A stretch of DNA of 64,000 nt, taken from contig NIVC01000662.1 of NCBI GenBank assembly GCA_002269645.1, positions 186,001 through 250,000 of the forward strand, read 5' to 3'. The position numbers and the translations under genes are program-made. The notes below the pieces were generated by a model that saw only the letters and a program-made list of their open reading frames with translations, made no database searches and was not told where the DNA came from. Below, piece after piece: positions 1,290 to 39,977 of this stretch (position 1 is its first letter; the number at the start of each line of letters is the position of its first letter). The DNA is from Macrostomum lignano. Taxonomy: Eukaryota.

Positions 1290-1498
1290 GTGAGGGGACG
1301 TCTATGGCTTGCTGTATCAAAATTCACATCCCCATGTTGAAATCCCAGGTTTGTTACTTTATATGGAGTTCCTCCATTTTCCTAACAAAACCTCTCTCAG
1401 TAAATTTTTATGATTCCCCTCCCACGACGTAATTCGATAATAATTGATCACACCTGCCCCAATTGGGCCAGATGTGCAACCGACAGCTCAGCCGCAGC

Positions 1499-1657
1499 TA
1501 TTGCGCGGCGCATCTGAAGGCTGCGTACGGCTGTTCAGTCTAAGGACTGGGAGGTCGCCACACACACACCCTCAATTACCCCAGCGAATGCTGGCACCCA
1601 TTTACAGCTGGGCGAACTGAAGCAATGCAGAGTTGAGTGACACAAATTGTTCCGAGT
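1499..1657 (-). mobile_element. 5'-truncated copy of a CORE-like SINE in Bak intron 1
   Basis: Near-identical reverse complement of 9770-9938 (tattgcgcggcgcatctgaaggctgc...ctgaagcaatgcagagtt), with a deletion of about 13 nt. Confidence 0.7.
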
Positions 1658-1684
1658 AGGTCGAGATAAGAACTCCCGAGCCCC

Positions 1685-1860
1685 ATCTGGAATTCCCAAT
1701 CTCAATTTCTCCATGTTGACTTCCCAATCTCAAATTCCACATGTTGAATTCCCAATCTCAAATTCCCCATGCTGATTTCCCACATAGAATTCCCCACCAT
1801 GCCAGCACTGCATGCTGAATTCCCACAAAGAATTCCCCACCATATTAGCACTGAATTCCC
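1685..1860. repeat. Degenerate tandem repeat (gaattccc...aat, roughly 20-30 bp units)
   Basis: Recurrent gaattccc/aattcccc/ctgaattccc motifs just upstream of the exon 2 acceptor. Confidence 0.5.
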
Positions 1861-1871
1861 GCCATCTGCAG

Positions 1872-2273
1872 GGCCGCTTGCAGCCGGGCGCGCCCAGCTC
1901 GCCTGAGCTCATCCTGCCGCCAGCCGATCCGCTCTCAGTCGAGGCCGGCATCGGTCGTCGCCTAGCCGAAATCGGCGACGAGATTCAACAGCGCTACCAG
2001 CCGGAATTCGACGAGATGATCAAATCTTTGGACGGCCAGCTGACTGACCCCGCCAGCTCGTTCGATACATTTCGCCGAGTAGCTCGCCGCCTGTTCCACG
2101 ACGGCTCCATCAACTGGGGCCGCATTGTTGCCCTGTTCTGCTTCGGCTATCGAATCGCCGTGGAGAAAATTCGCAGAGGCGTCTCAGGATTTCTGCGCAA
2201 CGTTGTGCAATGGATCTTCAGATTCTTAGTTCAGGAGCGCATCGCCAGGTGGATCGCCGATCACGGCGGATGG
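1872..2273 (+). CDS. BAK1: Bak-like protein, exon 2 (BH3, BH1, BH2)
   Basis: BH3 IGRRLAEIGDEIQQRY (Bak type), BH1 INWGRIVALFCFGY, BH2 WIADHGGW. Donor GGW|GTGAGC sits at the intron position conserved in Bcl-2 family genes. Acceptor at 1872; an in-frame alternative lies at 1884. Confidence 0.93.
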
Positions 2274-2869
2274 GTGAGCATCTGGTTATGATCTATGTGC
2301 CGAACTCATAGGTGAAGGACTAGTCATGATTGATTGCTCATTGGTAAGCATAGATATGCCCCCCCCCTGTCAGTTAAATGCGTTCTGAGTATCGATAGTT
2401 GGCTTTTGAGAAGTTTCTATCGTCTGTAGCATAAAGAGGTTCCCCAGTACTGTAGTTTTAAAGGGTGTGAAACGCGTATGTTCATGGCAAAAACTGAAAT
2501 AAACACAGCGGGTCTCTTTGTAATTTGTAATGTGGATGTTTAAATATTTAGTCATGGCAGAACTGACAATTCCCGTTAATTTATTACTTTTTAATGGAGA
2601 ATACACTATTTTCTAAGCAACGGATCAACGAATAGAAAAAAATTGTCTGTGTCCCAAAAAGCTACCGACTGACTCTATAAAGGCTTTGCATTGACTTATA
2701 TCGTTAAACAAAATATACATTCAACTTAAGCTATGCTCTTTTAATAAAAGCCTTCGGCTCAACGCTGAATCAACGCATAAAACACAACACGCACAGATAC
2801 TATCTTAATATACTAAATAATATACTATAAACTGGGGCACAAGCTTTCCTTTTGCCCGCTTGTGTCTTT

Positions 2870-3063
2870 GACTTTGATCTCTCTCCTTACTGCTCTCCCA
2901 TTGGCTGAGCCAGATTGGGCCTGCCCCCAAGGCTGACTTTGATCTCTCTCCTTACTGCTCTCCCATTGGCTGAGCCAAATTGGGCTTGCCCCCAAGGCTG
3001 ACTTTGCTCTTTCCTTACTGCTCTCCTATTGGCTGAGCCAGATTGGGCCTGCCCCTAGGCTGA
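2870..3063. repeat. 65-bp tandem repeat x3 in Bak intron 2
   Basis: gactttgatctctctccttactgctctcccattggctgagccagattgggcctgcccccaaggct, with copies anchored at 2871, 2936 and 3001. Confidence 0.9.
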
Positions 3064-3345
3064 GTTTCGTCAGTCACTATCACTTGTGTTATCGAGTTAA
3101 ATGCTTGTTGTTCGTTCTTAGCCCATATGCTCCTCGGGCCACAAACCCCGAAGAAGGAAAGGTAATTTTAGCTGACACATTAAATTAAAGTGGCACTGCG
3201 CAAAGAAACTACTTAAAATAAGTAGACGCAATCTAATTAGCATTTGCTTAAAGCTTCATTTATGTGTCTATGAGATAAGGCCATCTCGTCAATTCAACAT
3301 TTGCACTCAGCCAACATTCGATTTTCTCCGCTCCTCCACCCGCAG

Positions 3346-3456
3346 CGCTCGGTGACTCACATGGCCATCCAGACCCTGGACATGCCTCTGCTGATGGGTC
3401 TGTGCGCCCTGGCCGCCTCGCTCTGCTTCGTTGCCTACCGCCTGTCACGTCGTTGA
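3346..3456 (+). CDS. BAK1: Bak-like protein, exon 3 (C-terminal membrane anchor)
   Basis: Pyrimidine tract plus CAG acceptor at 3345, phase 0. Translates RSVTHMAIQTLDMPLLMGLCALAASLCFVAYRLSRR*, a hydrophobic tail with a basic end. Not in the ORF track; read by hand. Confidence 0.8.
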   Translation, partial: RSVTHMAIQTLDMPLLMGLCALAASLCFVAYRLSRR

Positions 3457-4769
3457 AACCTGGCACATTCTGTCGGGCTGTCTGATTGAGTCTGTCTGTC
3501 GCCATTTGCCACTATATGACTTATAGTAGTAGCCAAGTTCTGCAAACAGTGTACTTGCGCTTCCCCCACAAGTTTTAGCACCAGCTTGCCAATTTGCATC
3601 CTGTGGGATTTCCGTCTCTTTTGTAAATTCATTTTTGCTAATTGGCCATTTCAACGCATTCCGCCCCTATTCTTCCTTCCTTTCTGCCCCTATTCCCCTT
3701 TACTGACCCTATGATTCCCATTTCCGCTTCTATTCCTCGTTTTCAATCCCTATTCTTCTTGTCCGCCTCTGTTCTTTCCCCCGTTCTCCTTCCCGCCCCT
3801 AATACTGTACTCCTTAAATAAGTATTAGCTATTGCCAATGCTTACACAATAGCCTGGTTAATCCTGTTATTAAAATGTTGACAATTTACAAGCCGCGGCT
3901 ATTATAATTTCTTATAAATTAATAATATTCTATACCAACCCCAGTTTATAAACAAAGTTCGGCTTGTGGTGCAGCCACTTGTGCAATAACAACAGCCCAG
4001 AGAATGCAGAGGCATTGCTGCTGTATTAAAACTGATTTGCTTTACTTTTAAAATTTTACTTACTTTTTAAATAAATTAAATAAACAAGTTTTAATGCTAT
4101 TCTTTGTTGAGTTTTCTTAGCTTAAGTTTTGTTTAATTTTTTGTTTAAATAATCTTAAACTAATTAATATCAGATCTTCAGTTGGTTTATTAATTATTTA
4201 TTACTCAAACCCTTTATTGCAATGTGATTTCGGCTTACGCGCTTAGCTTTAAAAGCTTTCAAGTTTGCGCTGTTAATTAGAATCAATAATTTTCCCAGTG
4301 GCTTATAGCACCTGTACCTGTACGATAACTATGACTCATCTACTTATCCAGGCACCTAAGCAATTCCTTTATTGCTAGCTCATTTTTATTGTAATTATCA
4401 ACCCGTTTACTATTATAAGTAGTTGGTTTGCCTTGTCTTTATGTAGTTTCGTACGAATCGGTATAAATTTGAGCTGTCTGTAAAAAGAACAAAATATATC
4501 TGTGTAAAACCTGATCGCATTCTGTTTGATGTCACCTTATGGCTCTCGCGTTGCCAAGTTATTGTACCGAAAGTTACCCACGAGTTTTTTCATTGCTTTC
4601 TATATGTATATTGTCTATTCCTATTTTGATTCTGATTATTAGAGAATGGGGCAATATAAGAGTGTGCGCACCTTGCAGTGTTTTCTGTGTCAACAGGGGA
4701 GATGCAGAGCAGGGGATAGGGAGCGCTGTTGGTTAAGAAATGAGGGAAGGGTAAAGTAAGAACAGAAAG

Positions 4770-5250
4770 GAGAGAGTAAGAGCTGAGGGGAGAGGGTAAG
4801 AGCTGTGGGGAGAGGGTAAGGGCTGTGGGGAGAGGGTAAGAGCTGTGGGGAGAGGGTGAGAGCTGTGGGGAGAGGGTAAGAGCTGTGAGGGGAGAGGGTG
4901 AGAGCTGTGGGGAGAGGGTAAGAGCTGTGGGGGGAGGGTGAGAGCTGAGGGGAGAGGGTGAGAGCTGTGGGGAGAGGGTAAGAGCTGAGGGGAGAGGGTA
5001 AGAGCTGTGGGGAGAGGGTAAGAGCTGTGGGGGGAGGGTGAGAGCTGAGGGGAGAGGGTGAGAGCTGTGGGGAGAGGGTAAGAGCTGAGGGGGGAGGGTG
5101 AGAGCTGTGGGGAGAGGGTAAGAGCTGTGGGGGGGGGGTGAGAGCTGTGGGGAGAGGGTAAGAGCTGAGGGGAGAGGGTAAGAGCTGTGGGGAGAGGGTA
5201 AGAGCTGTGGGGAGAGGGTAAGAGCTGAGGGGAGAGGGTGAGAGCTGGGA
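4770..5250. repeat. 20-bp G-rich minisatellite
   Basis: Unit agagggtaagagctgtgggg and variants, about 24 copies. Confidence 0.95.
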
Positions 5251-5543
5251 GCTGAGAGGGTAAAAAACAGAAGTGAGAGGGTTAGAGTTGAGGTGAGAGG
5301 ATAAGAACATTGCGGAAAGGGTAAGAACAGAGCGGAGAGGGTAAGAACCTAGTGGAGTGGATTAGAACAGAAGGGAGAGGGTAAGATCGGAGGTGGGAGT
5401 GAAATTTATCGGATCAGAAAAAAGAGCTGCAATAAATAAGAGGTTCTATTAAAACTCACATAGCGAAAGTAAAAGAGGTGCAGACTGCTAATCCGAAAGC
5501 GCTGACCTTCAAATGTCCTCTATCACGCCTTAACGCTCCGCAG

Positions 5544-6683
5544 TCCGAGCACAATCCCTGCGTACCGGCGTTCACCCTGCGAGCTCTGAGCTCCCCGGTG
5601 ACGGCGCTGGCCTGCCTCACTGCACCATCTTCATCGATCAGTGGCGGCCAGCTACTGCTGCTGTCCGGACATCAGTCCGGCGATCTGGCCTGCTGGGATC
5701 TGCGAGTCCGCCGACCAGCGGCCACTCGATTTGGAGCTCATTCTGCCGCGGTTTTATCGATTCATTTTATTCCTAGCCTACCTGCAGTAGTCAGTCAAGG
5801 CCGCGACGGTGTTATTTTGGTGTGGCGCGTTGATTTCAGCGCCAAGGCTGGAGAGCAGCGCCTTCTTGGGCCGGAGCTGCGCCTCACCGATGCTTGCGAT
5901 TTGACGTTTTGCCGGGCTGTTGCTACTCCGTGCTGCCTGCTGTATCCGGGCGCTGGCGGTCACTCGCTGCGATGCCGCCTGTTCCACGCGGATGTCGCCG
6001 CTGGAGCCTCGGTTGGAGAAGCGGAAGTCTACGCTATTGATAAGGCTGAATTGGGAGTCTGCATGGCGCTGGCTCTGGTGGCAGCGGAGGCTTCCGCCCC
6101 ATCCTCCGAGCCTACCGCCCCCTCCTCCGCCCCATCCGCCGATCCTTCCGCCCCATCCGCCGATCCTTCCGCCCCATCCGCCGATCCTTCCGCCCCCTCC
6201 TCCGCCCCATCCGCCGATCCTTCCACCCCACCCGCCCCCCTGTTCCTGTCCGGCTACGAGAGCGGACACTGCGAGCTGATACGCTGGCCAACCCGGCTGT
6301 GCCGAATCCGCCTATTCGAAGAGCCGGTCATGGCCATAGACTACAGCGCCTCGGCTGGCCGGGCAGTGGCCGGCTCGGCCACGCCGGACTTGGCCCTGCT
6401 GGGTGTCACCGACCGGCTGAGGGTGCGCGGCCGAATCGCCGCCCCCAGTCCGGGCGTCGGCTGCCTCGCCTACCGGCCAGACGGCCGCCTGCTGCTGTCG
6501 GCCTCCTGGGATTCGCGGATTCGCCTGTACTCCGGCAAATCCTGCCGCCAGCTGGCCGTACTGTCTACTCACAGTAGCAGCGTTAGCGCGCTGGCTTTCA
6601 ATTCGACTAATGGCTGCTTTTATAGCGGCGATAAAGAAGGACTGATTTGCGCTTGGGAGCTGTACGCCCACTCGGGGCACTGA
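5544..6683 (+). CDS. GNB1L: GNB1L/ASA1-like WD40-repeat protein (start codon not in this exon)
   Basis: Colinear motifs with GNB1L: PAFTLRALSSPVTAL, LSGHQSG..WDL, SQGRDG...VW, TFCRA, LGVCMAL, LSGYESG, EEPVM, RPDGRLLLSASWDSRIRLY, LAVLSTHSSSV, WELY. Stop at 6681-6683. CAG acceptor at 5543. Confidence 0.88.
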   Translation, partial: SEHNPCVPAFTLRALSSPVTALACLTAPSSSISGGQLLLLSGHQSGDLACWDLRVRRPAATRFGAHSAAVLSIHFIPSLPAVVSQGRDGVILVWRVDFSAKAGEQRLLGPELRLTDACDLTFCRAVATPCCLLYPGAGGHSLRCRLFHADVAAGASVGEAEVYAIDKAELGVCMALALVAAEASAPSSEPTAPSSAPSADPSAPSADPSAPSADPSAPSSAPSADPSTPPAPLFLSGYESGHCELIRWPTRLCRIRLFEEPVMAIDYSASAGRAVAGSATPDLALLGVTDRLRVRGRIAAPSPGVGCLAYRPDGRLLLSASWDSRIRLYSGKSCRQLAVLSTHSSSVSALAFNSTNGCFYSGDKEGLICAWELYAHSGH

Positions 6684-6748
6684 GCCTCGGTGACCGGGTT
6701 TGCACTTGCGCTCTGGATTTTGCCTCCTTCAGCCGTTTTAGCGGTTTT

Positions 6749-8663
6749 CTCATCCGCCCCTGTTCTCCCACTCATCCGCCCCTGTTCTCCCACTCATCCG
6801 CCCCTGTTCTCCTACTCATCCGCCCCTGTTCTCCTACTCATCCGCCCCTGTTCTCCTACTCATCCGCCCCTGTTCTCCTACTCATCCGCCCCTGTTCTCC
6901 CACTCATCCGCCCCTGTTCTCCTACTCATCCGCCCCTGTTCTCTTACTCATCCGCCCATGTTCTCCTACTCATCCGCCCCTGTTCTCCTACTCATCCGCC
7001 CCTGTTCTCCCACTCATCCGCCCCTGTTCTCTTACTCATCCGCCCATGTTCTCCTACTCATCCGCCCCTGTTCTCTTACTCATCCGCCCATGTTCTCTTA
7101 CTCATCCGCCCCTGTTCTCTTACTCATCCGCCCCTGTTCTCCTACTCATCCGCCCCTGTTCTCCTACTCATCCGCCCCCTGTTCTCCTACTCATCCGCCC
7201 CTGTTCTCCTACTCATCCGCCCATGTTCTCCCACTCATCCGCCCCTGTTCTCCTACTCATCCGCCCCTGTTCTCTTACTCATCCGCCCCTGTTCTCCCAC
7301 TCATCCGCCCCTGTTCTCCTTCTCATCCGCCCCTGTTCTACTCATCCGCCCCCTGTTCTCCTACTCATCCGCCCCTGTTCTCCTACTCATCCGCCCCCTG
7401 TTCTCCTACTCATCCGCCCCTGTTCTCCTACTCATCCGCCCCTGTTCTCCTACTCATCCGCCCCTGTTCTCCTACTCATCCGCCCCTGTTCTCTTACTCA
7501 TCCGCCCCTGTTCTCCTACTCATCCGCCCCTGTTCTCTTACTCATCCGCCCATGTTCTCCTACTCATCCGCCCCTGTTCTCCCACTCATCCGCCCCTGTT
7601 CTCCTACTCATCCGCCCCTGTTCTCTTACTCATCCGCCCCTGTTCTCCTACTCATCCGCCCCTGTTCTCTTACTCATCCGCCCCTGTTCTCCTACTCATC
7701 CGCCCCTGTTCTCTTACTCATCCGCCCCTGTTCTCCTACTCATCCGCCCCTGTTCTCCCACTCATCCGCCCCTGTTCTCCTACTCATCCGCCCCTGTTCT
7801 CCTACTCATCCGCCCCCTGTTCTCCTACTCATCCGCCCCTGTTCTCCTACTCATCCGCCCCTGTTCTCCTACTCATCCGCCCCTGTTCTCCTACTCATCC
7901 GCCCCTGTTCTCCCACTCATCCGCCCCTGTTCTCCCACTCATCCGCCCCTGTTCTCCCACTCATCCGCCCCTGTTCTCCTACTCATCCGCCCCTGTTCTC
8001 TTACTCATCCGCCCCTGTTCTCTTACTCATCCGCCCCTGTTCTCCTTCTCATCCGCCCCTGTTCTCTTACTCATCCGCCCCTGTTCTCCTACTCATCCGC
8101 CCCTGTTCTCCTTCTCATCCGCCCCTGTTCTCCTACTCATCCGCCCCTGTTCTCCTAACTCATCCGCCCCTGTTCTCCTACTCATCCGCCCCTGTTCTCT
8201 TACTCATCCGCCCCTGTTCTCCTTCTCATCCGCCCCTGTTCTCCTACTCATCCGCCCCTGTTCTCCTAACTCATCCGCCCCTGTTCTCCTACTCATCCGC
8301 CCCTGTTCTCTTACTCATCCGCCCCTGTTCTCCTTCTCATCCGCCCCTGTTCTCCTACTCATCCGCCCCTGTTCTCTTACTCATCCGCCCCTGTTCTCCT
8401 TCTCATCCGCCCCTGTTCTCTTACTCATCCGCCCCTGTTCTCCTACTCATCCGCCCCTGTTCTCCTACTCATCCGCCCCTGTTTTCCTACTCATCCGCCC
8501 CTGTTCTCCTAACTCATCCGCCCCTGTTCTCCTACTCATCCGCCCCTGTTCTCTTACTCATCCGCCCCTGTTCTCCTTCTCATCCGCCCCTGTTCTCCTT
8601 CTCATCCGCCCCTGTTCTCCTACTCATCCGCCCCTGTTCTCCTAACTCATCCGCCCCTGTTCT
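6749..8663. repeat. 22-bp minisatellite, about 1.9 kb, just 3' of GNB1L
   Basis: Unit ctcatccgcccctgttctccta, about 87 copies. It has no stop codons, which explains the spurious ORFs in all three + frames. Confidence 0.97.
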
Positions 8664-9711
8664 CTATCATAATTTTGATAATTAACTATTGTCTTATCGA
8701 ATTTCACGAGCAATTCAAATACAACTATTAAAATGCATTTTTGTAAATTGAAATATAAAGTTTTTTGTCAACTGAAAGTTCAGCTGAATTTAAGTATCTG
8801 CTAAGAATTCCAATTCAAGTGAATTTAAATAACAATAAATACAGTTTTTAAGCTTCAATTACTGAAGGAAATTCCTTCATAATATTATTATTAATAATAT
8901 CCATAGTACTAATAGGAAAGAACTAAATAAATTTTTAATGACAGCTCAGAACTGCACGGCAGATTGTGTGCTTTTATATAATATCGCAAGTATATTGTGC
9001 ACACACTGCTGGGCTGATGCTGTGGGCTATGAAGAAGCATGCGCTGGTTAATTAAACTTTGCAAGGAATGAAATAACGATGAGGGAATCCTTTGCTTTGC
9101 TTCCTTACCTGTGTGTAGGGAATTGTAGGAAACTTGTCAGCAGATTGATGGGTGATGCAACCCGGACAGGCTCCCTGTATTCGCAGCCTTGTGTTATCAA
9201 ACTGACAACCGCCGGCCGGACAAAGGTCCCGTCCGAGCTCTCCATGCAGGAGGCCCAAGCGCGCGTGTCAAACGCTCTTCAAGTATTCAAACATTGGTCG
9301 AGCTCAATACTTGCCACCACCACTCAGGGTAAACACTATTATATATATTAGATATAAAATTGGTAAGGTTCATAGAGCTAGTGCTTATATTAGTCTGAAC
9401 TTTTAATAAAAACGATTCCAAATAAGTGTCTGCCTATTGAGCTGAGCTAAGAGGGGTTCGATTTCTTGTATATAAGTCGCTTTTAGAGTGACACGTGTCC
9501 AATGCCCTTGCGCTTCAAAGATCAAGTATGATATATCAGCAGGTACTTGAAGTATTGTCTGCAGCTCCAGTTATCAATAGTTATTAATTATTACTAATAC
9601 GAAAAAAGTTTGAACCACTCGCGATAGCTCATTATTGTCTGTAGCAAATATGGTGGACTTAAGAGGCCTTAATAATTACTTCTTCTCAATAATTAAAACT
9701 TTTTCACCTTG

Positions 9712-9938
9712 TCCATGTAGTTAAGGAACATTTTAAGGCAGGTCAGAGAAGATCAAGGGGTTCGATTCCCACTCGGGAAAATTTGTGTCCTTGAGCAAGA
9801 CACTTAACTCTGCATTGCTTCAGTTCACCTAGCTATAAAATGGGTGCCAACATTAGCTGGGGTAATTGAGGGTGTGTGGCGACCCCCCAGTCCTTGGACT
9901 GAACAGCCGTATGCAGCCTTCAGATGCGCCGCGCAATA
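9712..9938 (+). mobile_element. tRNA-headed CORE-like SINE
   Basis: Pol III B-box GGTTCGATTCC at 9759-9769. CORE-like segment tgtgtccttgagcaagacacttaac...ctataaaatggg at 9784-9843. A second copy lies at 1499-1657. Confidence 0.65.
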
Positions 9939-11346
9939 TCTGCGGCGCAAACTTCACATTTCTGAAAGGGTAGTATTATGGTTGCCGAAAAATTCAGATT
10001 CAAAGCCAATTTGAAACAATAATTTCTATTGCTAATCGAGCTTGAGATTTTGGCATTGAGATGGCCGGAACACTGCCATCTATAGTTAGTGCAGGGGTTG
10101 TAAAACTTTTTTACCTCAAAGTCCAGATAGAGAACCCAGCGCATGACTATGGGCCATGGTAGAAGGAGAGGGGAGAGGAAGGAGAGAGGAGAGGCAAGGG
10201 AATAAAGGAGAAGAGAGAGATGAAATAGGATAGGAGAGAGGAGAGAAGGGAGAGGAGAGGAGAGGAGAGCAGAGAGCTGAGAAGAGACAAATCTTGATCA
10301 GGCCGGATTGCTATTGTGAAGTTTCAAAAGACCCGAGGGCGGGATAGAGCCAGGCCGGAGTTTGCCAATCCGCGAGTTTAGAGTCTATAAAATTCTCTGC
10401 CAAAAGAGCAATAAAAAACATGCGCCAAACTGGCATTAAAATATTTTTATTCATGTTTAAAATGAGACCAAACTACAGGCAGTTATGACAACACTCACTT
10501 AGGTAAAATACTTCATTAATATACGTTTGTGTGCTGAAAATGACACTCCAGACTCGAGTTCAATGTCTTCCATCCTTGATTGAGTTCAGGCCAGCGGTCG
10601 CGCAGCTCCCATTGGTCCATAGCGGGCCGGTGGGGATGGCCGCGCGCGGTCACCCCTGGTCCCCTGGCAGCGAGCGACAAGCCAGGGAAGCCCATTAGCT
10701 ATGATTTGGGGTGACAGGGAAAAGAGGGGATTGGGAGAACTGGGATGGGAATCGAAAGCGGATGAGGCGGCCTGCTCCATCCACCCCAGCCGCCGCTGAG
10801 CCCCACCCCACAAATATTGACTGAGGTCCCAATTTAAAGTGTTGGAAGTCTGAATTATTCAGCCCAGCTAAATTATTCACTTGGCCCCGGCCTCAGCAGC
10901 GGTCCGACCCACCCATCCACCCGGACACACCGGCAGTAACCCTGCTAGCCTGCAGTCTGCGAACATTTGCACCCGCGGACCCTTAGTAGCAACAAGCTCT
11001 CAGCGCTAATCCTTCAGCATTCCCCAAGGCCGCGACCTACCCAGTTTGGCCGGCAGGTTTGAAAGCTGAACAAAGCATCACGGCGCTAACGGGCCCGCAT
11101 TCTTGGCGGTTCAACCAACCACCAGCCAACACGTACGGTCAGAGGCCCGACAGCAGCCGCAGCCGCAGCAGCAGCAGCAGCAGCGGAAGCAGCGGCGCAG
11201 GCGCCGGCGGCGGCGGGAGAGGCTGCGGCGGCGGCGGCGGCATAAACGTTTGGCCAGCAGCTGTGGACGACTGGGGACCGTCAGCTGCGGCGGCGGCGGC
11301 GGCAGCGGCGGCGGCCGCGGCAGCAGCGGGAGCCAACCCGCACGAC

Positions 11347-11427
11347 ATGATGGACGGTTTGTACCCGGGCGCGGGCGGCCCGCACTACAGGAGCTCCTGG
11401 GAGGCGATGCGACGCTGCGGTCCCTCC
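11347..11427 (+). CDS. POU4: POU class IV transcription factor (paralog A), exon 1
   Basis: MMDGLYPGAGGPHYRSSWEAMRRCGPS matches the Brn-3 N-terminal SEAMRR motif. Phase-0 donor TCC|GTGAGT. Confidence 0.75.
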
Positions 11428-11614
11428 GTGAGTGCCCGACTAAACTATACTGTTTTAAAAATCTGACCCTGAATAAACTTCTGCCTCGCGAACTCGCTCT
11501 CGCCCTCCCTCCAAGCATGCGTGCGCCGCTTTGTTTGCTCAAGGCCACTCCTCTCCACACAAGTTTCAACCGTAAGTTCACTCGACACTTCCCTTCCCTT
11601 TCCCTTAACAACAG

Positions 11615-12796
11615 GCCGCAGCCTTCGGCCTGGAGGACAACATCCTGGTTCGAGCCGCCAACCTCGTCGACACGCACGCTGGCGGAGTCGGCAGCGGCGA
11701 CGTCAAGCCCGGCGGCATGTCGGTGCCGCCGTTTCTGCGGCATCCGCAGGACGGCCTGCAGTACGCGGCGGCGGCGGCAGCGGCGACTCCTCCTGGCTTT
11801 GACAGTCAGGGCAGGCCGGCCGCCCCGCATCCGCAGATGCAGCCGCAGGCTCAGCATCAGCATCAGCAACAACAACAACATGAGCACACCCAGCAGCTGT
11901 TGCAGCATCCTTCCCAGCATCATCATCAGCTTCATCAGCAGCAGCAGCAACAGCAGCAGCAACATCTGCAGCATCAGCAGCAGCAACAGCAGCAGCAACA
12001 CGCCCTGTACATGCACGACATGCACCACGGCGCTGCGGGGTTCGAGTCCCACCTGCACGCCATGGGCGCCGTGGCCGGCTACGCCTACCCGACCTCCGCC
12101 TACGCCGCCTCCGTCAATTCCTCCTCCCCCTCGTCCTCGCAGGCGGCGGCAATGGCAGCAGCGGCCGCGGTCACCTCCAGCGCTGCCGCAGCTGCAGCCG
12201 CCGCCGCCGCAGGCCAGATGGTCGGGGACGCCTGCGCCGTCGGTCCCTACGGCATGCCGCAGCTGTCGCAGGCGCCGCAGCCGCCAGTCGGCGAGCTGGA
12301 CTACGATCCGCGCGAGCTAGAAGCCTTCGCCGAGCGGTTCAAGCAGCGCCGGATCAAGCTGGGCGTCACCCAGGCCGACGTTGGCAAGGCGCTGGGCAAC
12401 CTGAAGCTGCCTGGAGTCGGGTCCCTGTCGCAGTCGACCATGTCGCTGACGCTGTCGCTGACGCTCAGCCACAACAACATGATCGCGCTCAAGCCGGTGC
12501 TCCAGGCCTGGCTGGAGGAGGCCGAGCACGTCGCCATGGAGCGGCTGAAGAACCCGGACTTCTACGGCGACGGGCTGGACAAGAAGCGCAAGCGAACGTC
12601 CATAACGGACGCGGAGAAGCGCTCGCTGGAGGCCTACTTCCACGTGCAGCCCCGGCCGTCCTCGGAGAAGATCTCCCAGATTGCCGAGAAGCTCAACCTG
12701 AAGAAGAATGTCGTCCGAGTCTGGTTCTGCAACCAGCGCCAGAAGCAGAAGCGAATGAAATTTGCTTCCCCGGGCATGCACCCGAGCCCGATCTGA
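11615..12796 (+). CDS. POU4: POU class IV transcription factor (paralog A), exon 2; POU-specific helix 3 altered
   Basis: In-frame acceptor ACAG at 11614. POU4-box-like FGLEDNILVRAANL, polyQ/H and polyA tracts, POU-S DPRELEAFAERFKQRRIKLGVTQADVG, homeodomain KRKRTSI...VVRVWFCNQRQKQKRMK. Confidence 0.93.
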   Translation, partial: AAAFGLEDNILVRAANLVDTHAGGVGSGDVKPGGMSVPPFLRHPQDGLQYAAAAAAATPPGFDSQGRPAAPHPQMQPQAQHQHQQQQQHEHTQQLLQHPSQHHHQLHQQQQQQQQQHLQHQQQQQQQQHALYMHDMHHGAAGFESHLHAMGAVAGYAYPTSAYAASVNSSSPSSSQAAAMAAAAAVTSSAAAAAAAAAAGQMVGDACAVGPYGMPQLSQAPQPPVGELDYDPRELEAFAERFKQRRIKLGVTQADVGKALGNLKLPGVGSLSQSTMSLTLSLTLSHNNMIALKPVLQAWLEEAEHVAMERLKNPDFYGDGLDKKRKRTSITDAEKRSLEAYFHVQPRPSSEKISQIAEKLNLKKNVVRVWFCNQRQKQKRMKFASPGMHPSPI

Positions 12797-13009
12797 CTCT
12801 CCCTGTCGGTGACTGCTGGATTATTTTCTTACACCTGAACCTGGGACGGTGGGCAGCTAAGCCTACAGATGCTCATGCTGAGCACGAGGGACCCCACGCT
12901 ATTCTTGTCGTTCGAATTTGTGGCACACACGAGGTCTGCCCGATGGTTCCTGTTGAATCCTTTGTCTGAATCTTTATGCGACTGTCTCACTGTATTTTGC
13001 TATCTAGTT

Positions 13010-13445
13010 CTGTCTCTCTCTAGGTCTATCTCTCTAGGTCTATCTCTCTGGGTCTATATCTCTCTAGGTCTATCTCTCTGGGTCTATATCTCTCTAGGTC
13101 TATCTCTCTAGGTCTATTTCTCTATGTCTATCTCTCTGGGTCTATATCTCTCTAGGTCTATCTCTCTATGTCTATCTCTCTGGATCTATATCTCTCTGGG
13201 TCTATATCTCTCTAGGTCTATCTCTCTAGGTCTATCTCTCTAGGTCTATCTCTCTATGTCTATCTCTCTGGATCTATCTCTCTAGGTCTATCTCTCTAGG
13301 TCTATCTCTCTAGGTCCATCTCTCTAAGTCTATCTCTCTAGGTCTATCTCTCTAGGTCTGTCTCTCTGGGTATATCTCTAGGTAGATCTCTCTATGTCTA
13401 TCTCTCTACTTCTATCTCTCTAGGTCAATCTCTCTGGGTCTCTAT
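13010..13445. repeat. 14-bp minisatellite
   Basis: Unit tctatctctctagg and variants. Confidence 0.9.
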
Positions 13446-14009
13446 ATCCCTCCCTATCTGTGCGTCAGCTGTTCGTTGCATTTGTGTGCTCAGACTCCGC
13501 ACAAGCCCCTTTGCACCTGCAGTCCAATGCATGGACTCGCACAGCACTTGCACCCTATATTGATTCCTCATTCGAACAAATTTTCTGTTACCTATTATTA
13601 GCAGTCCCTATACCACTCGGCTGGACTTTCATCTATCTAGTCTTTGTTTGACTCTCTGTTTGACTGTCGTTCAACTTTTATTTGCTCTTTTTGAGGGTAT
13701 GGTTTCTTTTTTAAATTTAATCCTAAAACATTTGTCTATTGCTTGCTTGCTGGGTTCTCCGCTTTAAAATTTTGCTTTTTTGATCTGAATTGCAAGTTGT
13801 TATTAATATATATATATAATTAAAAATTAATCTCAAATTACTTATTCGTATGCATTAGTAAAAAAGTGAAAACAAATGAAATTCATCAAGTTTGAGTAGC
13901 TGACTCAGATTAGACAGTACTTAGCATTAATAACTATATTTAATATCACTTTAAATAGGTTTTGAAAATGCCCACAAAATCATAAAGCTTTGCACAGACT
14001 CACTAAATG

Positions 14010-14540
14010 TCAAACAGACCCATAAAGCTTCACGCAGTTCTACGAAGCTTCACACAGACACTCAAAGCTTCACACAGACACTCAAAGCTTCACACAGATA
14101 CTCAGAGCGTCACACAGACCCGTAAAGCATCACACAGACCCATAATGCGTCACAAAGATCCATAAAGCGTCACACAGACCCATAAAGCATCACACAGAAA
14201 CCCATAGAGCATCACACAGACCCATAAAGCATCACACAGACCCATAAAGCATCACACAGAAACCCATAGAGCATCACACAGACCCATAAAGCATCACACA
14301 GACCCATAAAGCATCACACAGAAACCCATAGAGCATCACACAGACCCATAAAGCATCACAAAGAAACCCATAAAGCATCACACAGAAACCCATAGAGCAT
14401 CACACAGACCCATAAAGCATCACAAAGAAACCCATAAAGCATCACACAGAAACCCATAAAGCATCACACAGAAACCCATAGAGCATCACACAGACCCATA
14501 AAGCATCACAAAGAAACCCATAAAGCATCACACAGAAACC
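14010..14540. repeat. 20-21-bp minisatellite
   Basis: Unit cacacagacccataaagcat / cacacagaaacccatagagcat. Confidence 0.92.
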
Positions 14541-15047
14541 AAACACCCAAAGCTTGTCTATCGCATGTCTCTTATGAGAAAAATCCAATCCAGTTAAATG
14601 GCCATAGGCTTGCATCCAAGTCAATTTATAAAGTTTGTGAAAAAAACAAATTTCACAGAGAACTGACACGTGGCAGTTTTGAGAAGCTGACAGCCGAAGC
14701 ATTGCCAAGTTGAATCATGCATGTTCAGCTTCTCAGATCACAACGGTTGACTTTGTTTGCTCAAGAAGCTTCTGCAGGCAAACTAAAGAATAACAGAGCC
14801 TGCAGCAGCTTCCAGTCCACCGCAATCTCTTTGCCAATGCACCTTTTGCCAAGCTAATATATTGATTGATCTTGTAAGGCTTTTTTTGAGAGTTGGTCAG
14901 CCTCGGTCGCCTCCGCCATCATCTCAGTTTGCAGGAGGGAAAGAAAGAGAGAAACTACATCTAGTTCAGGGACTCCTTAATAAGAGGTCCATGCCTCAAC
15001 AGAATTTTTTTTAAATAAAGTTCGTTGGTAGGGCATTTCCTACGGAG

Positions 15048-15078
<31 letters not shown>

Positions 15079-15879
15079 TTCTCCCCCTAAAGTCTTCGCT
15101 AAAGGGAAAGCATTATAGTAAGGTGTATATACGTCAGTAGTAAGTAAGTAGTTGGTAGCTGGCAGCAGAGCTGATTGAATGCCTGTGTGTAGGAAATACA
15201 CACGGAGGTACACACAGGAGAGCTACATCCATGCTTCCCTCCCGCCGTTTGCGGCATGTCCTCAGGTACATAGTGGAGGGGCATTGTTTAATCTAGTGGG
15301 GGGACTTAGCGGGCGATGGGGGATGGGGGAGGGCCTGCAGAGTCGCCAGCCAGCATAAATATTTCACACAGCTGCGCGATTCTCACAGGCCAAGTGTGCC
15401 TCATCTCTCTCTCTCTCTCTCTCTCTCTCACCAAAAAACCCACCGTTTTTTACACTAATACTACGGCTATATAATAACTCTAGAATTATTTCAGCAAGAG
15501 AGCTCATTAAATGGTGCCGCCATGCTCAGCTTTAGATTAGATGGGGGGGTGAAGGGGTGAGGGGGAGAGAGAGGAGAGACTCAAACAGGCGATGGCGGTG
15601 GGAGGCTGGGGCAACATCTAGAAATTCTTAGTCTTAGTAACTATAATGCAGACTATTTAAATAATCATTTTTGTCTGCAAATAAACCGATTAAACTTTGA
15701 ATAACAATACTTGAAATATGGGAATTATAGTAACAGGGCTGGGTTTTCAGCTGCGCATTATAATTTTTTGACATGCATCTTCATCTTTTTGTGAGGTTAA
15801 ACAATCCATAAATTTTCTATTTTTAATCCCGGAGTAAATGAGTTCGTTGAGAGTGGAAGCGGGAGAGACCGACTCCTAG

Positions 15880-16200
15880 GGAGAAGAAGGAGAGGATGAG
15901 AAGAGGGGGAGGATGAGAAGAGGGGAGGATGAGAGGAGGGGGAGGATGAGAAGAGGGGGAGGATGAGAAGAGGGGAGGATGAGAAGAGGGGAGGATGAGA
16001 AGAGGGGGAGGATGAGAAGAGGGGGAGGATGAGAAGAGGGAGGATGAGAAGAGGGGAGGATGAGAAGAGGGGGAGGATGAGAAGAGGGGAGGATGAGAAG
16101 AGGGGGAGGGTGAGAAGAGGCGGAGGATGAGAAGAGGGGGAGGATGAGAAGAGGGGGAGGATGAGAAGAGGGGAGGATGAGAACAGGGGCGGATGAGGTG
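15880..16200. repeat. 17-18-bp purine-rich minisatellite
   Basis: Unit gaggatgagaagagggg(g). Confidence 0.92.
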
Positions 16201-16984
16201 AGAGTGGCCACCTCAAAGGCCTTCCAATCCTCAATCTGGGCTCACAGCTCCAGTTTCTCAGCCGCATCGCGTATAAATGCTCACAGTTCTATCATTGTTG
16301 TGCCCTGTAGACCTTAACTCTTTGCCTGTAATGAAATGTCAACAGTTGAACAATACGGTGAGATCGCAGGCTGTACAGAGAAAAGACAATGATAACAAGA
16401 AAAGAAGCTACATTGATAGATTTATTGCCATAACCATAATTTCTTGTTCCACAAGCCTGCTTCTTTGACGACTTGAACGAATGAGCTTGATGGGAGAAAC
16501 TCCCCCCCCCCAATTGATTGATGACTTGTGACTTTTTGCAAAGCTCTGGCTTGTTTTTTTCCCCTCCTCCGCACCTGAATGCCCCCCCCCCCACCAAAAA
16601 ATCCTCAACCAGCAGCCTCTCAGCCTCATCATTATCAGAGACAGAAATATGGAAGTCGCTAAAGTCATGAGCTGGTGGTGTGTAGCTGTTGGGATAATTT
16701 CCCCTGACAAGAGCCCGCGCCTACCCGCCTCGGCCATCATCAAAAAGTCAAGCTATTTGTTTCGCTATTCTCATGCCATAAAATAATATATCAATTTATG
16801 CGAAGGATTGTTCCCCAACTTCCCAGCATGATCCATGGGGCAAACAAGTGGCGGTGCCGGTATGATGCGGGCTTGGCCTTGTAGAGTCCTGCTGAGAACA
16901 CTGAAAATTCACGCGCAGACTCTGAATGAGAGACAGGCTTCACGAAACTTCACAAACAGGTGGCAGATACATTATGCAGAGTCT

Positions 16985-17390
16985 TAAACTTTCACAAAGA
17001 CCCCAGAAACTTCACGCAGACCCCAGAAACTTCACACAGACCCCAGAAGATTCACGCAGACCCCAGAAGATTCACACAGACCCAGAAACTTTCACACCGA
17101 CTCCATAAACTTCACACAGACCCCAGAAACTTCACACAGACCCCAGAAACTTCACACAGACCCCAGAAACTTCACACAGACCCCAGAAACTTCACACAGA
17201 CCCCAGAAGGTCCATACAAACTCCAGAAACTTCATACAGACTTCAGAAACTTCATACAGACTCCATAAACTTCATACAGAGTACAGACTCTAGAAACTTC
17301 ACACAGACTCCAGAAACTTTATACAGACTTCAGAAACTTCACACAGACCACAGAAGATTCACACAGACTCCAGAAGCAGACTCATAAAGC
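16985..17390. repeat. 20-bp minisatellite
   Basis: Unit cacacagaccccagaaactt. Confidence 0.92.
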
Positions 17391-19109
17391 TTCTCAGACT
17401 CAGAGCTTGCCACCAGGATCAGGATGTACCCCGATTCTCTTCCCCAAATTCAACTACCATTCACCGTTGCCAACTCCGGACAAACCTGACTGACACACCT
17501 GACACCAATTAACCGCTGGAATTCCCTGCCATATTGCGTCACCACCCCCACCCCGTGCAGTGAATTCCATAAGGAATGAAAGTGAGCGCCAGGCGTATGG
17601 GAGTTGGAAGGGCCAAGATCCTCATTTTCGGGGAAATTGACTCACCGCAGTCTTCATGCTCCCCCCCCCAACTGTGCGGACCCCGGCCGCCTCAAGGGAA
17701 CAATAAAACAAACCGGCGGGGGGTCACCTTCTGGTGGTCGGTCGGGACTTGGCCTGAGACGCTGCTATATACTGATAGTTAGAACTGCTCAAGACTGTTG
17801 ATGCAGCTTAACAGCGGTCTGGCCAGACTCTCCAACTCCAACGCAGCTGTTCCCATCCAGACAGACTTCCCAGGGATGTTTTTGCGTGTAAAACAGGCCA
17901 AGGCATATAATCCCAGCCTTGCCCCTAATAAGCTTCAAGAGAGCTTTGGTATGCGCTGAGTTCTGGGGGGGGGGGGCGGGGTTCGCGGTGTGTGTGCGGT
18001 ATGTGTTTGCGCGTGTGTCCTGCAGTCGCTCTTCCCTTGGAACAGAAAATCTTTTTACAATCCTATATAGGATTTTTTGTAGAATACAAGCGAATAAAAC
18101 AAGCCTGTCCCTCCGCGTCTTAGGCCGATCTCAGCGAGACAGGGGGACATAACCTCAGAGTGGCTGCGGCCTGTCGCTGCGGCGGTGTCATTACTCAATC
18201 GGTGCGTATGATGGGGTATAAAACACGGGCCAAGGCTGAAGACCAGATGGGCAGCGGGAGACGGGGAATCGGAGCGGACGAGAGCAAGCGAGAGAACATG
18301 TGCAATGCGACCCGACTCCTAAGCTCTGCCTACCCCCGCCCCCGCTCCTTGAGCTTGATCCCCTCCCCCCAAAGCCATGGATCCTCGCGAGTCACCTGGA
18401 CTCATTTATCTGATATCTATCTGATATCTATCTGAATGCGGCTGGATTAGATTTTTTATAGTTATTCATTGTTAAAAGCAAGAGATTCAGTGTTCGTGCC
18501 TCCACCCCCGCTACCGGTGGCCACATGTTATCAAAGTTTAGGCCTAGACTGGCCGCTTATTTGGCTCTTGACTGCGGGTCAGTGCTGTCAGAGGTAGAGA
18601 GGGAGAGGGGGATAGTGTAGCATCCTGTAGCAATACTAAAGGATGCTAAAGTGCTTTAGTACGTGTAAAAGTATGTAAGAAGTATTGAAAAAAGTTATTT
18701 TTTTTAAATCGTTGACAGATCATAGTCGCCACACAGTTTATTATATAATAATAGCTACAGTTAATATACAACCGCAATTAAAGTTGGACCCCCTGATGTG
18801 CAGTCCAGCCAGTGAAAGCCGAAATTTCTCTTTAAACATTTAGTAGATGGAGCAGATTGACAGGTGAAAGTGACCCGTCTGTCCGTTCCACATGGAGTTA
18901 TAATGACATTCGCTACGCTCTGTTGAGCCAATCTTTTTTAATTGCCATTTTTATTGCCAATCAGAGCTGATTTCCAACCCGGCTAATTGTACAGCAACTG
19001 CGGCGGCTGTGGGAGAATTCAGGTGAACTGCTGTTTGCCATTCATTTGGCAGCTGGCCAGTGCGTTCGGGTGCGCCTGCCGCTCTCCTCTAGCAAGAGAT
19101 ACTTGAGAT

Positions 19110-22007: not shown

Positions 22008-23087
22008 TCACATGTCCAGCGTCTGGCCGCTGTCCTCGTCGGTGCCAACTTCGAAGTCTTCGGCCTCGCCCGGCGGCAGCGGGAGACGCCGGCAGGTTGG
22101 CGTCGGCGGCGCCTGGTCGGCCTGGCAGTTGCCGATCTTGATTCTCTTCTGCTTCTGGCGCTGGTTGCAGAACCAGACTCTCACGACGCTCTTCTTTAGG
22201 CCGAGCTTCTGAGCAATGTCGCCGATCTTGTCCGAGGACGGCCGGGACTGCACGGCGAAATAGGCTTCGAGAGAGCGCCGCTCCGGCGTTGCTATGGAAG
22301 TCCGGCGCCGCTTGGCCTCGCGAAGGCCCGAGCACAGCCTGGACTGGTACTGCCGCTCCGCGTGCACCAGCCACTGCTCCAGGATCGGCCGCAGCGCCAG
22401 CATGTTGTTGTGGCTCAGGGTCAGCGACTCGAACCGGCAGATGGTCGACTGCGACAGCGAGCCCATGCCGGCCACGTTCAGCTGGGCGATGTCGCGGCCA
22501 ACGTCGGCCTGGGTGAAACCGAGCTTCACTCGGCGCTGCTTGAACGCCTCGGCGAACTGCTCCAGATCGCGGATGGTCTCCTGGCTCAGCGTCTGGCTGA
22601 TGGCTCTGGCCTCCTCCAGCCACTGGATCCCGCTTGGTGAGGAGCCGCCGCCGTGCATCGGCGAGGACTGGTGCACCTGCTGCTGCTGCTGCTGTTGGGC
22701 CAGATGAGGCGGAGGCTGAGTTGGTGCCTCAGCGGCAGTCGAGTAGCAGTGGAATCCGAAGACTGCGGCCGCAGCGGCTTGCTGGCCGAAGTCGAGGCTG
22801 TTGCCGGTGTACCAGCAGCTGGGCTGGCTCTGATGGTGATGCTGCTGCGTCTGCTGAGGCTGATGATGCTGGTGCTGATGGTGCTGAAGATGGTGATGAT
22901 GCTCCTGGTGGTGACTCGAGTAGCCGTGATGAAGGCTGTGCTGCTGATGCTGCTGATGCTGCAGGTTCCAAGCTGCTGCGGCGGCTGTCGCGGCCGCGGC
23001 CGTGAGGCCGAAATGCTGCTGCAGATTGTCTGCAGGTGGATGTTCCTGTCTGACAGCTGGACAGGCTCCACCGTTGGTGGTTGCCAT
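22008..23087 (-). CDS. POU4: Divergent POU class IV transcription factor (paralog B), single coding exon, 359 aa
   Basis: ATG at 23087. POU-S RDLEQFAEAFKQRRVKLGFTQADVG...SLSQSTICRFESLTLSHNNMLAL and homeodomain KRRRTSIATPERRSLEAYF...VVRVWFCNQRQKQKR carry POU4-diagnostic residues. Q/H-rich N-terminus. Confidence 0.92.
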   Translation of the reverse strand: MATTNGGACPAVRQEHPPADNLQQHFGLTAAAATAAAAAWNLQHQQHQQHSLHHGYSSHHQEHHHHLQHHQHQHHQPQQTQQHHHQSQPSCWYTGNSLDFGQQAAAAAVFGFHCYSTAAEAPTQPPPHLAQQQQQQQVHQSSPMHGGGSSPSGIQWLEEARAISQTLSQETIRDLEQFAEAFKQRRVKLGFTQADVGRDIAQLNVAGMGSLSQSTICRFESLTLSHNNMLALRPILEQWLVHAERQYQSRLCSGLREAKRRRTSIATPERRSLEAYFAVQSRPSSDKIGDIAQKLGLKKSVVRVWFCNQRQKQKRIKIGNCQADQAPPTPTCRRLPLPPGEAEDFEVGTDEDSGQTLDM

Positions 23088-23129: not shown

Positions 23130-24540
23130 CTGGGATAAATTAATGAAGTAGCTCGTATTATAATATGACGTATGATATTGTGAAAAGTTATTTGAAAATT
23201 TCATACTTAAATTTAGTAATGCCATAGACTACTAGAATAAAACCAATGCCATAGAATACAGACTCAAATCAATGCCATAGACTATAGAATCAAGTCAATG
23301 CCATAGAGTATAGAACCAAGTCAATGCCATAGACTATAGAATAAAATTAATTCCATAGACTACATAATCAAATCAATACCATAGACTATAGAATCAAGTC
23401 AATGTCATAGACTACAGAATAAACTTAATTCCATAGACTACAGAATCAAATCAATGCCATAGACTACAGAATCAAATCAATGCCATAGACTACAGAATCA
23501 AATCAATGCCATAGACTATAGAATCAAATCAATGCCATAGACTACAGAATCAAATCAATGCCATAGACTACAGAATCAAATCAATGCCATAGACTACAGA
23601 ATCAAATCAATGCCATAGACTACAGAATCAAATCAATGCCATAGACTATAGAATCAAATCAATGCCATAGACTACATAATCAAATCAATGCCATAGACTA
23701 CAGAATCAAATCAATGCCATAGACTACAGAATCAAATCAATGCCATAGACTATAGAATCAAATCAATGCCATAGACTACATAATCAAATCAATGCCATAG
23801 ACTACATAATCAAATCAATTCCATAGACTACAGAATCAAATCAATGCCATAGACTATAGAATCAAATCAATGCCATAGACTACATAATCAAATCAATGCA
23901 ATAGACTACATAATCAAATCAATTCCATAGACTACAGAATCAAATCAATGCCATAGACTACATAATCAAATCAATGCAATAGACTACATGATCAAATCAA
24001 TTCCATAGACTACAGAATCAAATCAATGCCATAGACTACATAATCAAATCAATGCCATAGACTATAGAATCAAATAAATGCCATAGACTACAGAATCAAA
24101 TCAATGCCATAGACTATAGAATCAAATCAATGCCATAGACTACAGAATAAAATTCCATAGACTACATAATCAAATCAATGCCATAGACTATAGAATCAAG
24201 TCAATATCATAGACTACAGAATAAACTTAATTCCATAGACTACAGAATCAAATCAATGCCATAGACTATAGAATCAAGTCAATATCATAGACTACAGAAT
24301 AAACTTAATTCCATAGACTACAGAATCAAATCAATGCCATAGACTACAGAATCAAATCAATGCCATAGACTACAGAATCAAATCAATGCCATAGACTACA
24401 GAATCAATTCAATGTCATAGACTACAGAATCAAATCAATGCCATAGACTACAGAATCAAATCAATGCCATAGACTACAGAATCAAATCAATGCCATAGAC
24501 TACAGAATCAAATCAATGCCATAGACTCAAACTGACTTAC
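23130..24540 (-). other. Predicted 5'-UTR intron of POU4 paralog B
   Basis: Perfect donor GAG|GTAAGT at 24541/24540 and acceptor tttatcccag at 23130, 42 nt before the ATG. An in-frame stop in those 42 nt shows they are UTR. Confidence 0.55.
23220..24527. repeat. 26-bp minisatellite
   Basis: Unit aatcaaatcaatgccatagactacag, about 50 copies. Confidence 0.97.
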
Positions 24541-27745: not shown

Positions 27746-28589
27746 AAGAGAGTCAGAGAGAGACTAGAGGCAGACAGAGAGAAACTAAAATAGAAGTTCA
27801 GCAACGAGAATTGCGCTCGAGTTAACGGACTCGCAGCACCTGAGTTATTTGCAGCACCTGACAGTTTTATTTGAGGCCCGCAATATGGTCTCTTCAACTC
27901 CCGTGGAACCAGTTAAAAGACCCCGAGTTTTGCATCAACCGCCTGAAGTCAATGAGGGATCAAAAAAATTTTTGCTCTAAAAAATGAAATTCAGAACAGA
28001 ACTCACCGCAGAGGTTCGGCCGGAGCCAGAGACGAGCAAGTTAAAGGCACATAGCAGAGAATTAAAGTTGAGTTTGCCTGCTCTACAACCCTCTCCCCAA
28101 CTTTAAAAAAAGAAGCAAACGTGCAGTCCTGGCTGGTAGGTAAAAAACCTGCAGCAAATTGATGATTGCAGGCGCTAAAAAGTCGCGGCTGCCGCCCCTA
28201 GGAGGGAACTGTTGCAGTCGGGATCGGGGGGGGGGCAGTGCAGGCATCGTTCATATGGGGGGTGGCAAACTGAGACCAGCATGATGTCTGCAGCAGCAGC
28301 CTAAAGGGATAATAATGAGGACACCATAATGAGGGCATTGTGAATATGGGAGGGCTTCAACTTGATAGAGCAGCAAGTCAGGAGAGGGCGCAGGCCTGCG
28401 ACCCTGAGACCGAAAAAATAAACTTGTGAAGTAGAATGCTTTATTCTCTGCTAGACAATCCCCCTCACAGAGTCTGTGTTCAGTGCTGAGACTGGTGGAG
28501 TCCGGCGTTGAGATGGAGTGGAATAAAACAAAATGAGAAACTTTAAAATGAGATGAAGTGAATCAAGTTGATAGAGAAACAGACAAAAA

Positions 28590-39905: not shown

Positions 39906-39977
39906 TGGGTTGGAGGGTATTCTACCCGTAATCGCTGAGCTTCAAAGCCGTCAGTATAGGGCAAAGAATACACTCAC

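Follow-up and report, generated by a model that had tools for sequence, protein, structure and literature searches.

A pou4 copy of Macrostomum lignano with its recognition helix partly overwritten by the adjacent 12 nucleotides: young templated lesion or assembly error

Class IV POU transcription factors, among them vertebrate POU4F1-3 (Brn-3), C. elegans UNC-86, Drosophila Acj6/I-POU and planarian pou4, combine a POU-IV box with a POU-specific domain and a homeodomain. In the standard numbering of the POU-specific domain, the segment S-Q-S-T-I-C-R-F-E corresponds to residues 43-51 of helix 3. Ser43, Gln44, Thr45 and Arg49 are the helix-3 residues which have been proposed to make major-groove contacts (PMC2425483). 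The pou4 gene described here, designated gene A, is located in a stretch of 64,000 nucleotides of Macrostomum lignano DNA (the window; contig NIVC01000662.1 of assembly Mlig_3_7, GCA_002269645.1, positions ~186001-250000). It likewise possesses the POU-specific domain, the homeodomain and the POU-IV box of the class, and deviates at one site only from a near-identical sister copy in the same assembly, as 12 nucleotides of helix 3 have been exchanged for a copy of the 12 nucleotides that follow. The window matches NIVC01000662.1 at all 21,450 positions compared, so that the replaced block is part of the public record and not a local corruption.

At the DNA level, 12431-12476 reads cag tcg acc ATG TCG CTG ACG CTG TCG CTG ACG CTC agc cac aac aac, and Tandem Repeats Finder (TRF) reports at 12441-12465 a 12-bp unit (TGTCGCTGACGC) in 2.1 copies with 100% matches. 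The first of the two tandem copies of GTCGCTGACGCT is a perfect copy of the second and takes the place of CTGCCGGTTTGA without a change in length, which identifies the block as a templated replacement (Table 1). The original prediction, made from the letters and open reading frames (ORFs) alone, had noted this tandem 12-mer together with the protein readings SQST-MSLTL-SLTLSHNNM in gene A and SQST-ICRFE-SLTLSHNNM in a second POU gene on the minus strand of the window, paralog B; all of this is borne out by the reading frames, with the gene A ORF (11717-12796) containing GSLSQSTMSLTLSLTLSHNNMIALKP and the minus-strand ORF (22008-23087) containing GSLSQSTICRFESLTLSHNNMLALRP. Its claim that length and frame are preserved can now be based on the sister copy, which aligns without a gap and with all 9 mismatches inside the block and is a much better comparator than paralog B. 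Three junction sequences would tell the possible forms of the site apart, ACCATGTCGCTGACGCTGTCGCTGACGCTCAGC for the variant, ACCATCTGCCGGTTTGAGTCGCTGACGCTCAGC for the canonical and CGACCATGTCGCTGACGCTCAGCCAC for a hypothetical deletion-only form; ATGTCGCTGACGCTGTCGCTGACGCTC likewise represents the variant. The repeat is extended by the single T at 12441 alone and no longer microhomology is present in the canonical sequence. Besides the tandem pair, the window harbours one further copy of the 12-mer at 22417-22428 with one mismatch (three matches versus 0.07 expected). This copy is found at the homologous site of paralog B, and as the 12-mer occurs nowhere else in the window, an ectopic donor has been rejected.

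The sister copy was recognized through the protein collection. The best database match of gene A is PAA78860.1 (BOX15_Mlig000992g4; P0001 in our collection) with 99% identity, and its cluster at 90% identity has one further member, PAA64001.1 (BOX15_Mlig000992g3; P0121), a protein of 420 aa encoded on contig NIVC01001793.1 of the same assembly. On that contig the DNA reads ACC ATC TGC CGG TTT GAG TCG CTG ACG CTC, thus ICRFE-SLTL (canonical segment ATCTGCCGGTTTGAG). Exon 1 and exon 2 of gene A together also encode 420 aa, which equal PAA64001.1 except for aa 303-307. The identity extends to a 4.35-kb island covering the upstream region, both exons, the intron and the 3' region, in which the block apart, only a 1-bp indel differs between the contigs; SNPs specific to the copies begin at 9312 on the upstream side and at 13663, 13725 and 13747 on the downstream side. 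Outside the island, unique sequence shows 0.9-1.0% substitutions (for example 3051-4866 and 5406-6856) plus many indels and repeat-length changes, and at this divergence ~40 substitutions would be expected in 4.35 kb. Since none is found outside the block, the block constitutes one event and not accumulated change; as a perfect copy of the next 12 nt in a tract otherwise free of substitutions it is not due to chance, and independent point mutations, which would have to place 9 changes in 12 nt versus none elsewhere in 4.35 kb, are ruled out. That the event is 'recent or artefactual', originally argued from the conservation of the rest of the gene, is thereby considerably strengthened, with gene, intron and untranslated ends matching the canonical sister copy; judged by this comparison, the event is either very young or not biological. 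The original prediction had also named ICRFE in reads or cDNA at this site as the mark of an assembly error. ICRFE does occur, but on the other contig, NIVC01001793.1, and this reading concerns the sister copy.

Table 1. Features of the two POU genes and of the replaced block (positions in the window).
Feature	Position	Strand	Description
Replaced block	12442..12453	+	GTCGCTGACGCT where the canonical copy has CTGCCGGTTTGA; 9/12 mismatches versus the sister contig (L002), no gap
Template copy	12454..12465	+	GTCGCTGACGCT; codons for SLTL, canonical in all POU4
Codons 303-307	12440..12454	+	MSLTL for ICRFE, POU-specific residues 47-51, helix 3; the only 5 residue differences from PAA64001.1 (P0121)
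Zero-substitution island between the two assembly copies	9312..13663	.	4.35 kb, whole gene; besides the block only a 1-bp indel at 10707
pou4 gene A exon 1	11347..11427	+	27 codons, MMDGLYPGAGGPHYRSSWEAMRRCGPS, then GT donor; translation equals the N-terminus of PAA78860.1 and PAA64001.1
pou4 gene A intron	11428..11614	+	187 nt, GT..AG; exon mapping
pou4 gene A exon 2	11615..12796	+	aa 28-420 plus stop
POU-specific domain of gene A	12308..12526	+	aa 259-331; Pfam PF00157
POU homeodomain of gene A, intact	12584..12754	+	aa 351-407; Pfam PF00046, 70-71 bits
Paralog B, divergent class IV-like POU gene	22008..23087	-	359-aa ORF, ICRFE intact

In the protein, the replacement changes Ile47 to Met, Cys48 to Ser, Arg49 to Leu, Phe50 to Thr and Glu51 to Leu, and keeps residues 43-46 (SQST). 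The overwriting of the recognition helix proposed in the original prediction is consequently correct for the C-terminal half of helix 3 (Ile47-Glu51, ICRFE), which is replaced in frame by the next 12 nt, but does not extend to the N-terminal SQST contact residues. The affected segment aligns to TICRFEAL and TISRFEAL of the solved POU3F1 and POU2F3 domains, and among the POU4 relatives fetched that have a recognisable motif, ICRFE is present in 233 of 234. The lone other deviation is found on a 900-nt European Nucleotide Archive (ENA) contig (P0004), which reads ICRFV with Glu51 changed to Val. The Pfam Pou score decreases from 106.6 bits in the canonical copy to 84.6-87 bits in the window copy, and with Arg49 and Glu51 absent the window protein does not have an intact recognition helix 3, while the sister copy possesses every class feature tested. 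As read from the sequence, the base contact of Arg49 is lost in the variant. The replacement of two large hydrophobic residues would in addition destabilise the domain, which probably folds poorly, and the variant protein may at best bind DNA weakly via its intact homeodomain. Since NIVC01001793.1 carries an intact copy, the idea of a homeodomain-only or dominant-negative factor loses some of its urgency.

With respect to class, the sequence places gene A in the class IV POU (Brn-3/UNC-86) genes as a member by descent, as had been assumed from the outset. The POU-specific domain (PF00157, 84.6 bits) and the homeodomain (PF00046, 70.6 bits) both exceed the curated cut-offs, with 106.6 and 70.1 bits in the sister copy, and the top matches outside M. 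lignano are POU4F1, POU4F2, POU4F3 and Brn-3 with 73-85% identity over the POU region. The N-terminal POU-IV box RSSWEAMRRCGPSAAAFGLEDNILVRAANLVD, which aligns to RSSEMMRRHCMGNPTGNLFGGLDEGLLARAEALAAVD of other POU4 proteins, spans the junction between the two exons, so that its second half falls in exon 2, along with a region rich in Gln, His and Ala and both the POU-specific domain and the homeodomain. Of the class IV signature SQSTICRFESLTLSHNNMIALKP, the sister copy has every residue and the window copy all but ICRFE.

That such closely related contigs coexist is in line with the origin of the assembly. Mlig_3_7 was built with Canu 1.4 from PacBio continuous long reads (CLR) of the inbred DV1 line; polishing by Pilon 1.20 drew on Illumina reads and on RNA sequencing (RNA-seq) reads mapped with STAR. 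Because DV1 carries additional large chromosomes, the assembly is substantially redundant, and its authors count 180 Mb of non-repetitive sequence in duplicated blocks with >=95% identity (PMC5730564). The raw data of DV1 comprise PacBio SRX1063031, Illumina SRX2866466-SRX2866494 and RNA-seq SRP082513 and SRR2682326. Flanking single-nucleotide polymorphisms (SNPs; 0.9-1.0%), amino-acid differences and a 383-nt repeat expansion in a WD40-repeat gene indicate that NIVC01000662.1 and NIVC01001793.1 are truly different genomic copies. The gene names g3 and g4 might imply further pou4 copies g1 and g2; this has been rejected, as the naming clusters transcriptional units that can hold several genes and the 90% cluster consists of two members. 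The assembly thus probably contains two pou4-A loci only.

The neighbouring sequence displays differences of its own between the copies. The WD40-repeat gene (5478-6683, plus strand) is an intact 401-aa ORF in the window, with two amino-acid substitutions versus the sister contig, where the 383-nt expansion of the coding APSSAPSA(D/N)PS minisatellite (L002 ~5381-5763), not being a multiple of 3, splits the ORF into 394 + 117 aa. Each contig accordingly carries its own apparent lesion, in the WD40 gene of the sister and in pou4 of the window copy. Further upstream, the annotated product of a Bcl-2 family gene (~1347-3456, plus strand) has 279 residues here and 255 on the sister contig. The divergence between the copies is a mosaic, with no substitution besides the block in the island and 2 substitutions in 15427-19061, and with differences of ~1-2.4% in the stretches 3051-6856 and 13663-15427, the WD40 coding sequence included. 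This pattern in the aligned sequence points to gene conversion or homogenisation between the duplicated chromosomes in the recent past, more than to purifying selection alone.

Two kinds of origin have thus to be weighed, a mutation in the animals and an error of the assembly, and either would be rare, since a real deletion-insertion and a templated block error are both rare events. We favour, with a probability of about 0.5, a real lesion specific to this pou4 copy, a figure that includes the small share for a functional, expressed variant. In this explanation the window would hold one of two near-identical pou4 copies in which a single complex event has swapped CTGCCGGTTTGA for a copy of the adjacent GTCGCTGACGCT, by a deletion with a flank-templated insertion arising in polymerase-theta end joining, serial replication slippage or error-prone synthesis during gene conversion; the latter could likewise account for the homogenised 4.35 kb around the block. 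Of the POU-specific domain the product would retain helices 1, 2 and 4 and the first residues of helix 3 (SQST), besides the POU-IV box and the complete homeodomain, while Ile47-Glu51 would be lost. The copy would be a young allele of the loss-of-function or hypomorphic type, which the animals would tolerate since pou4 function is provided by the canonical copy on NIVC01001793.1. Serial replication slippage is a source of deletions with flank-templated insertions, and DNA synthesis in mitotic gene conversion is prone to template switches. The same outcome is a documented repair signature of polymerase-theta-mediated end joining (PMC8364232 and work cited there). A template-switch origin would fit the location of the block inside a tract that has apparently been homogenised recently between the copies.

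Several further observations speak for a natural origin. The reading frame is kept and the gene is otherwise undamaged; indels are frequent between the copies, with ~8 indels of >=4 nt per roughly 100 SNPs in aligned unique sequence; and since the window contains 38 TRF rows with a score >=300, with minisatellite units of 12-44 bp and arrays of up to 129 copies, short-unit duplication is active in this genome. The density of such minisatellites is very high; they are located for example at 6749-8664, 23218-24527, 28581-31166, 37765-39924, 54264-55691 and 57747-59405, in agreement with the reported 15% tandem-repeat content of the genome. As the DV1 genome is duplicated, selection on any one copy is relaxed. 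To our knowledge, no ordinary error mode of long-read consensus building or of Pilon produces a templated block of equal length unless reads contain it.

Other observations weigh against a mutation in the animals. The 4.35-kb island, in which none of the ~40 expected substitutions has accumulated outside the block, leaves a very short time window for a natural mutation. The event has struck the five most conserved residues of the domain, to whose conservation a sequencing or assembly error would be blind, and that exactly 12 nt were deleted and exactly 12 nt inserted, with a junction microhomology of <=1 nt, is a coincidence for a natural event. The sequence derives from an early PacBio CLR/Canu 1.4 build with residual 1-bp errors nearby. 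The M. lignano matches in the protein-database searches, for which the full 359-aa ORF, a 65-aa stretch around the site and a 168-aa POU region served as queries so that short and long fragments were probed separately, are only the two proteins annotated on Mlig_3_7, neither of them independent; M. lignano Logan, ENA or transcript-derived fragments were not among the matches to these three queries, and the exact 359-aa gene A ORF product is absent from the protein collection. The literature search found no paper that mentions Mlig000992, and the one paper treating M. lignano pou4 does not discuss the copies or the block site (PMC11398382).

The deposited annotation points in the same direction. 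PAA78860.1 comprises 416 aa with SQSTM-SLTLSHNNM, four residues fewer than the DNA implies, and agrees neither with the translation of the contig (420 aa, MSLTLSLTL) nor with the canonical gene. Joining the exons without 12442-12453 yields this protein exactly, so that the gene model contains a non-canonical 12-nt pseudo-intron over the block. For the annotation, StringTie models built on STAR-mapped reads were combined with a de novo transcriptome aligned by BLAT, of which the hits no more than 1% below the best were retained. By default STAR does not call gaps of <21 nt introns, while BLAT splits an alignment into two blocks at a patch with 9 of 12 mismatches, which turns into an intron upon conversion of blocks to exons. 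The most economical reading is thus that a canonical transcript, or less likely a transcript with a 12-nt deletion, was mapped onto this contig, and the transcript behind the annotation was probably not collinear with the variant. A non-collinear transcript does not equal absence of the variant from the DNA, as it may have been transcribed from the sister copy. A real 12-nt deletion allele, for which the 416-aa protein might be taken as evidence, has been rejected, because skipping 12442-12453 of the same contig reproduces that protein and identifies it as an annotation artefact.

An assembly or consensus artefact, in which both copies are really ICRFE or this copy carries a simple 12-nt deletion and the block was made in the Canu or Pilon steps, is a serious contender, if somewhat short of an even chance. 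It could have originated in Canu correction, template stitching or consensus building, or in local reassembly by Pilon, the build being Canu 1.4 on PacBio CLR with Pilon 1.20, and it may have survived polishing since canonical read pairs would align better to the sister contig and be absorbed there. The identity of the sister contig over 4.35 kb apart from the block, the pseudo-intron that most likely stems from a BLAT-mapped de novo transcript disagreeing with the contig, and a hit on five residues conserved in nearly all homologs with no other sign of decay are readily accommodated by an error; so is the exact retention of length if something was projected onto a backbone of canonical length. 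Five single-G indels between the copies at 15921-16085 (165 bp, in a 17-bp GA-rich tandem repeat) moreover resemble unpolished PacBio homopolymer errors and show that the local assembly quality is imperfect. However, usual consensus and polishing errors are 1-bp indels or inter-copy homogenisation and not a perfect templated replacement of 12 nt, Pilon in its pileup and k-mer reassembly writes only sequence borne by reads, and a PacBio consensus of many reads should out-vote one aberrant read. The site is located ~198 kb into a 320-kb contig, away from its ends, and no specific software step can be named that gives the exact product. The projection of reads from a deletion allele onto a backbone of canonical length would explain the length, but the exact sequence was not obtained with standard aligners, and this conjecture has been set aside.

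Two further explanations are much less probable. The block might be a real and functional variant, an expressed POU4 that binds by its homeodomain alone or titrates partners, with altered specificity or a dominant-negative role, and so represent early neofunctionalisation after genome duplication. The replacement preserves the frame and leaves the homeodomain, the POU-IV box and the remaining POU-specific domain untouched, and flanks and untranslated ends being those of the canonical copy throughout the island, the same cells would be expected to express it; within class IV there is the precedent of Drosophila I-POU, reported as a non-DNA-binding inhibitory isoform. Yet such a role requires the block to be real first, the annotation transcript is probably not collinear with the variant form, the absence of further substitutions gives no signature of selection either way, and Ile47 to Met together with Phe50 to Thr would be no less likely to unfold the domain than to retune it. 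That the variant is fixed on one duplicated DV1 chromosome, perhaps as a by-product of gene conversion, and is expressed in pou4-positive neurons with a POU-specific domain unable to read DNA, is improbable. Even less credit is given to two independent events, namely the loss of the 12 nt of CTGCCGGTTTGA and, separately, a tandem duplication of the 12-nt GTCGCTGACGCT. Short-unit tandem duplication is rampant in the genome and the deposited PAA78860.1 reads the deletion-only form, but two rare events of the same size would have to fall at adjoining positions in 4.35 kb without other substitution, and an artefact in the annotation of this same DNA accounts fully for the deletion-only protein.

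Paralog B, located 9 kb downstream of gene A in convergent orientation and with a His/Gln-rich N-terminus, is 66% identical to gene A and 68% identical to human RDC-1 (a POU4 relative of 331 aa) over the POU domain. The exact product of its ORF is absent from the protein collection.

If the lesion is real, it would be a dated single-event case of a redundant, deeply conserved neuronal selector gene that starts to decay or diverge in a recent polyploid, and at the same time a clean natural flank-templated deletion-insertion with a possible link to gene conversion. As an artefact, it would serve as a warning that in Mlig_3_7 one copy of a key transcription factor contains a block error, which has led to a further error in the deposited PAA78860.1. 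In either case M. lignano keeps an intact pou4 copy, so that the biology of POU4 need not be rethought, and for the same reason the block will not greatly surprise the specialist. No new kind of system is involved; at most, the block adds a case in which a duplicated developmental regulator of a neopolyploid has begun to decay or diverge.

Compared with known systems, the block resembles the deletion-insertions left by polymerase theta or slippage in that a perfect copy of adjacent sequence fills a short deletion as one clustered event in unchanged DNA, and differs from them by the equal tracts (12 and 12) and a microhomology of <=1 nt. With the copy-specific consensus errors of redundant long-read assemblies it shares the occurrence in one of two near-identical Canu and Pilon contigs without being mirrored by the transcript-based annotation, but a perfect templated block of equal length is a non-standard type of error. 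Dominant human disease alleles of POU1F1 and POU4F3 encode POU variants impaired in DNA binding; as in these alleles and in I-POU, a DNA-contacting segment is altered with otherwise intact domains, so that the window variant could interfere with the canonical factor, whereas those cases are backed by genetic or biochemical evidence and the window variant comes from assembly sequence. Within class IV itself, the POU region of gene A shares 76-85% identity with POU4 proteins of animals as distant as vertebrates and flatworms, and its short 5' exon followed by a long 3' exon is the layout described for flatworm and Hydra pou4 (PMC11398382). The difference concerns POU-specific residues 47-51, where ICRFE is near-invariant in the class and the window copy has MSLTL, while the sister copy is fully canonical.

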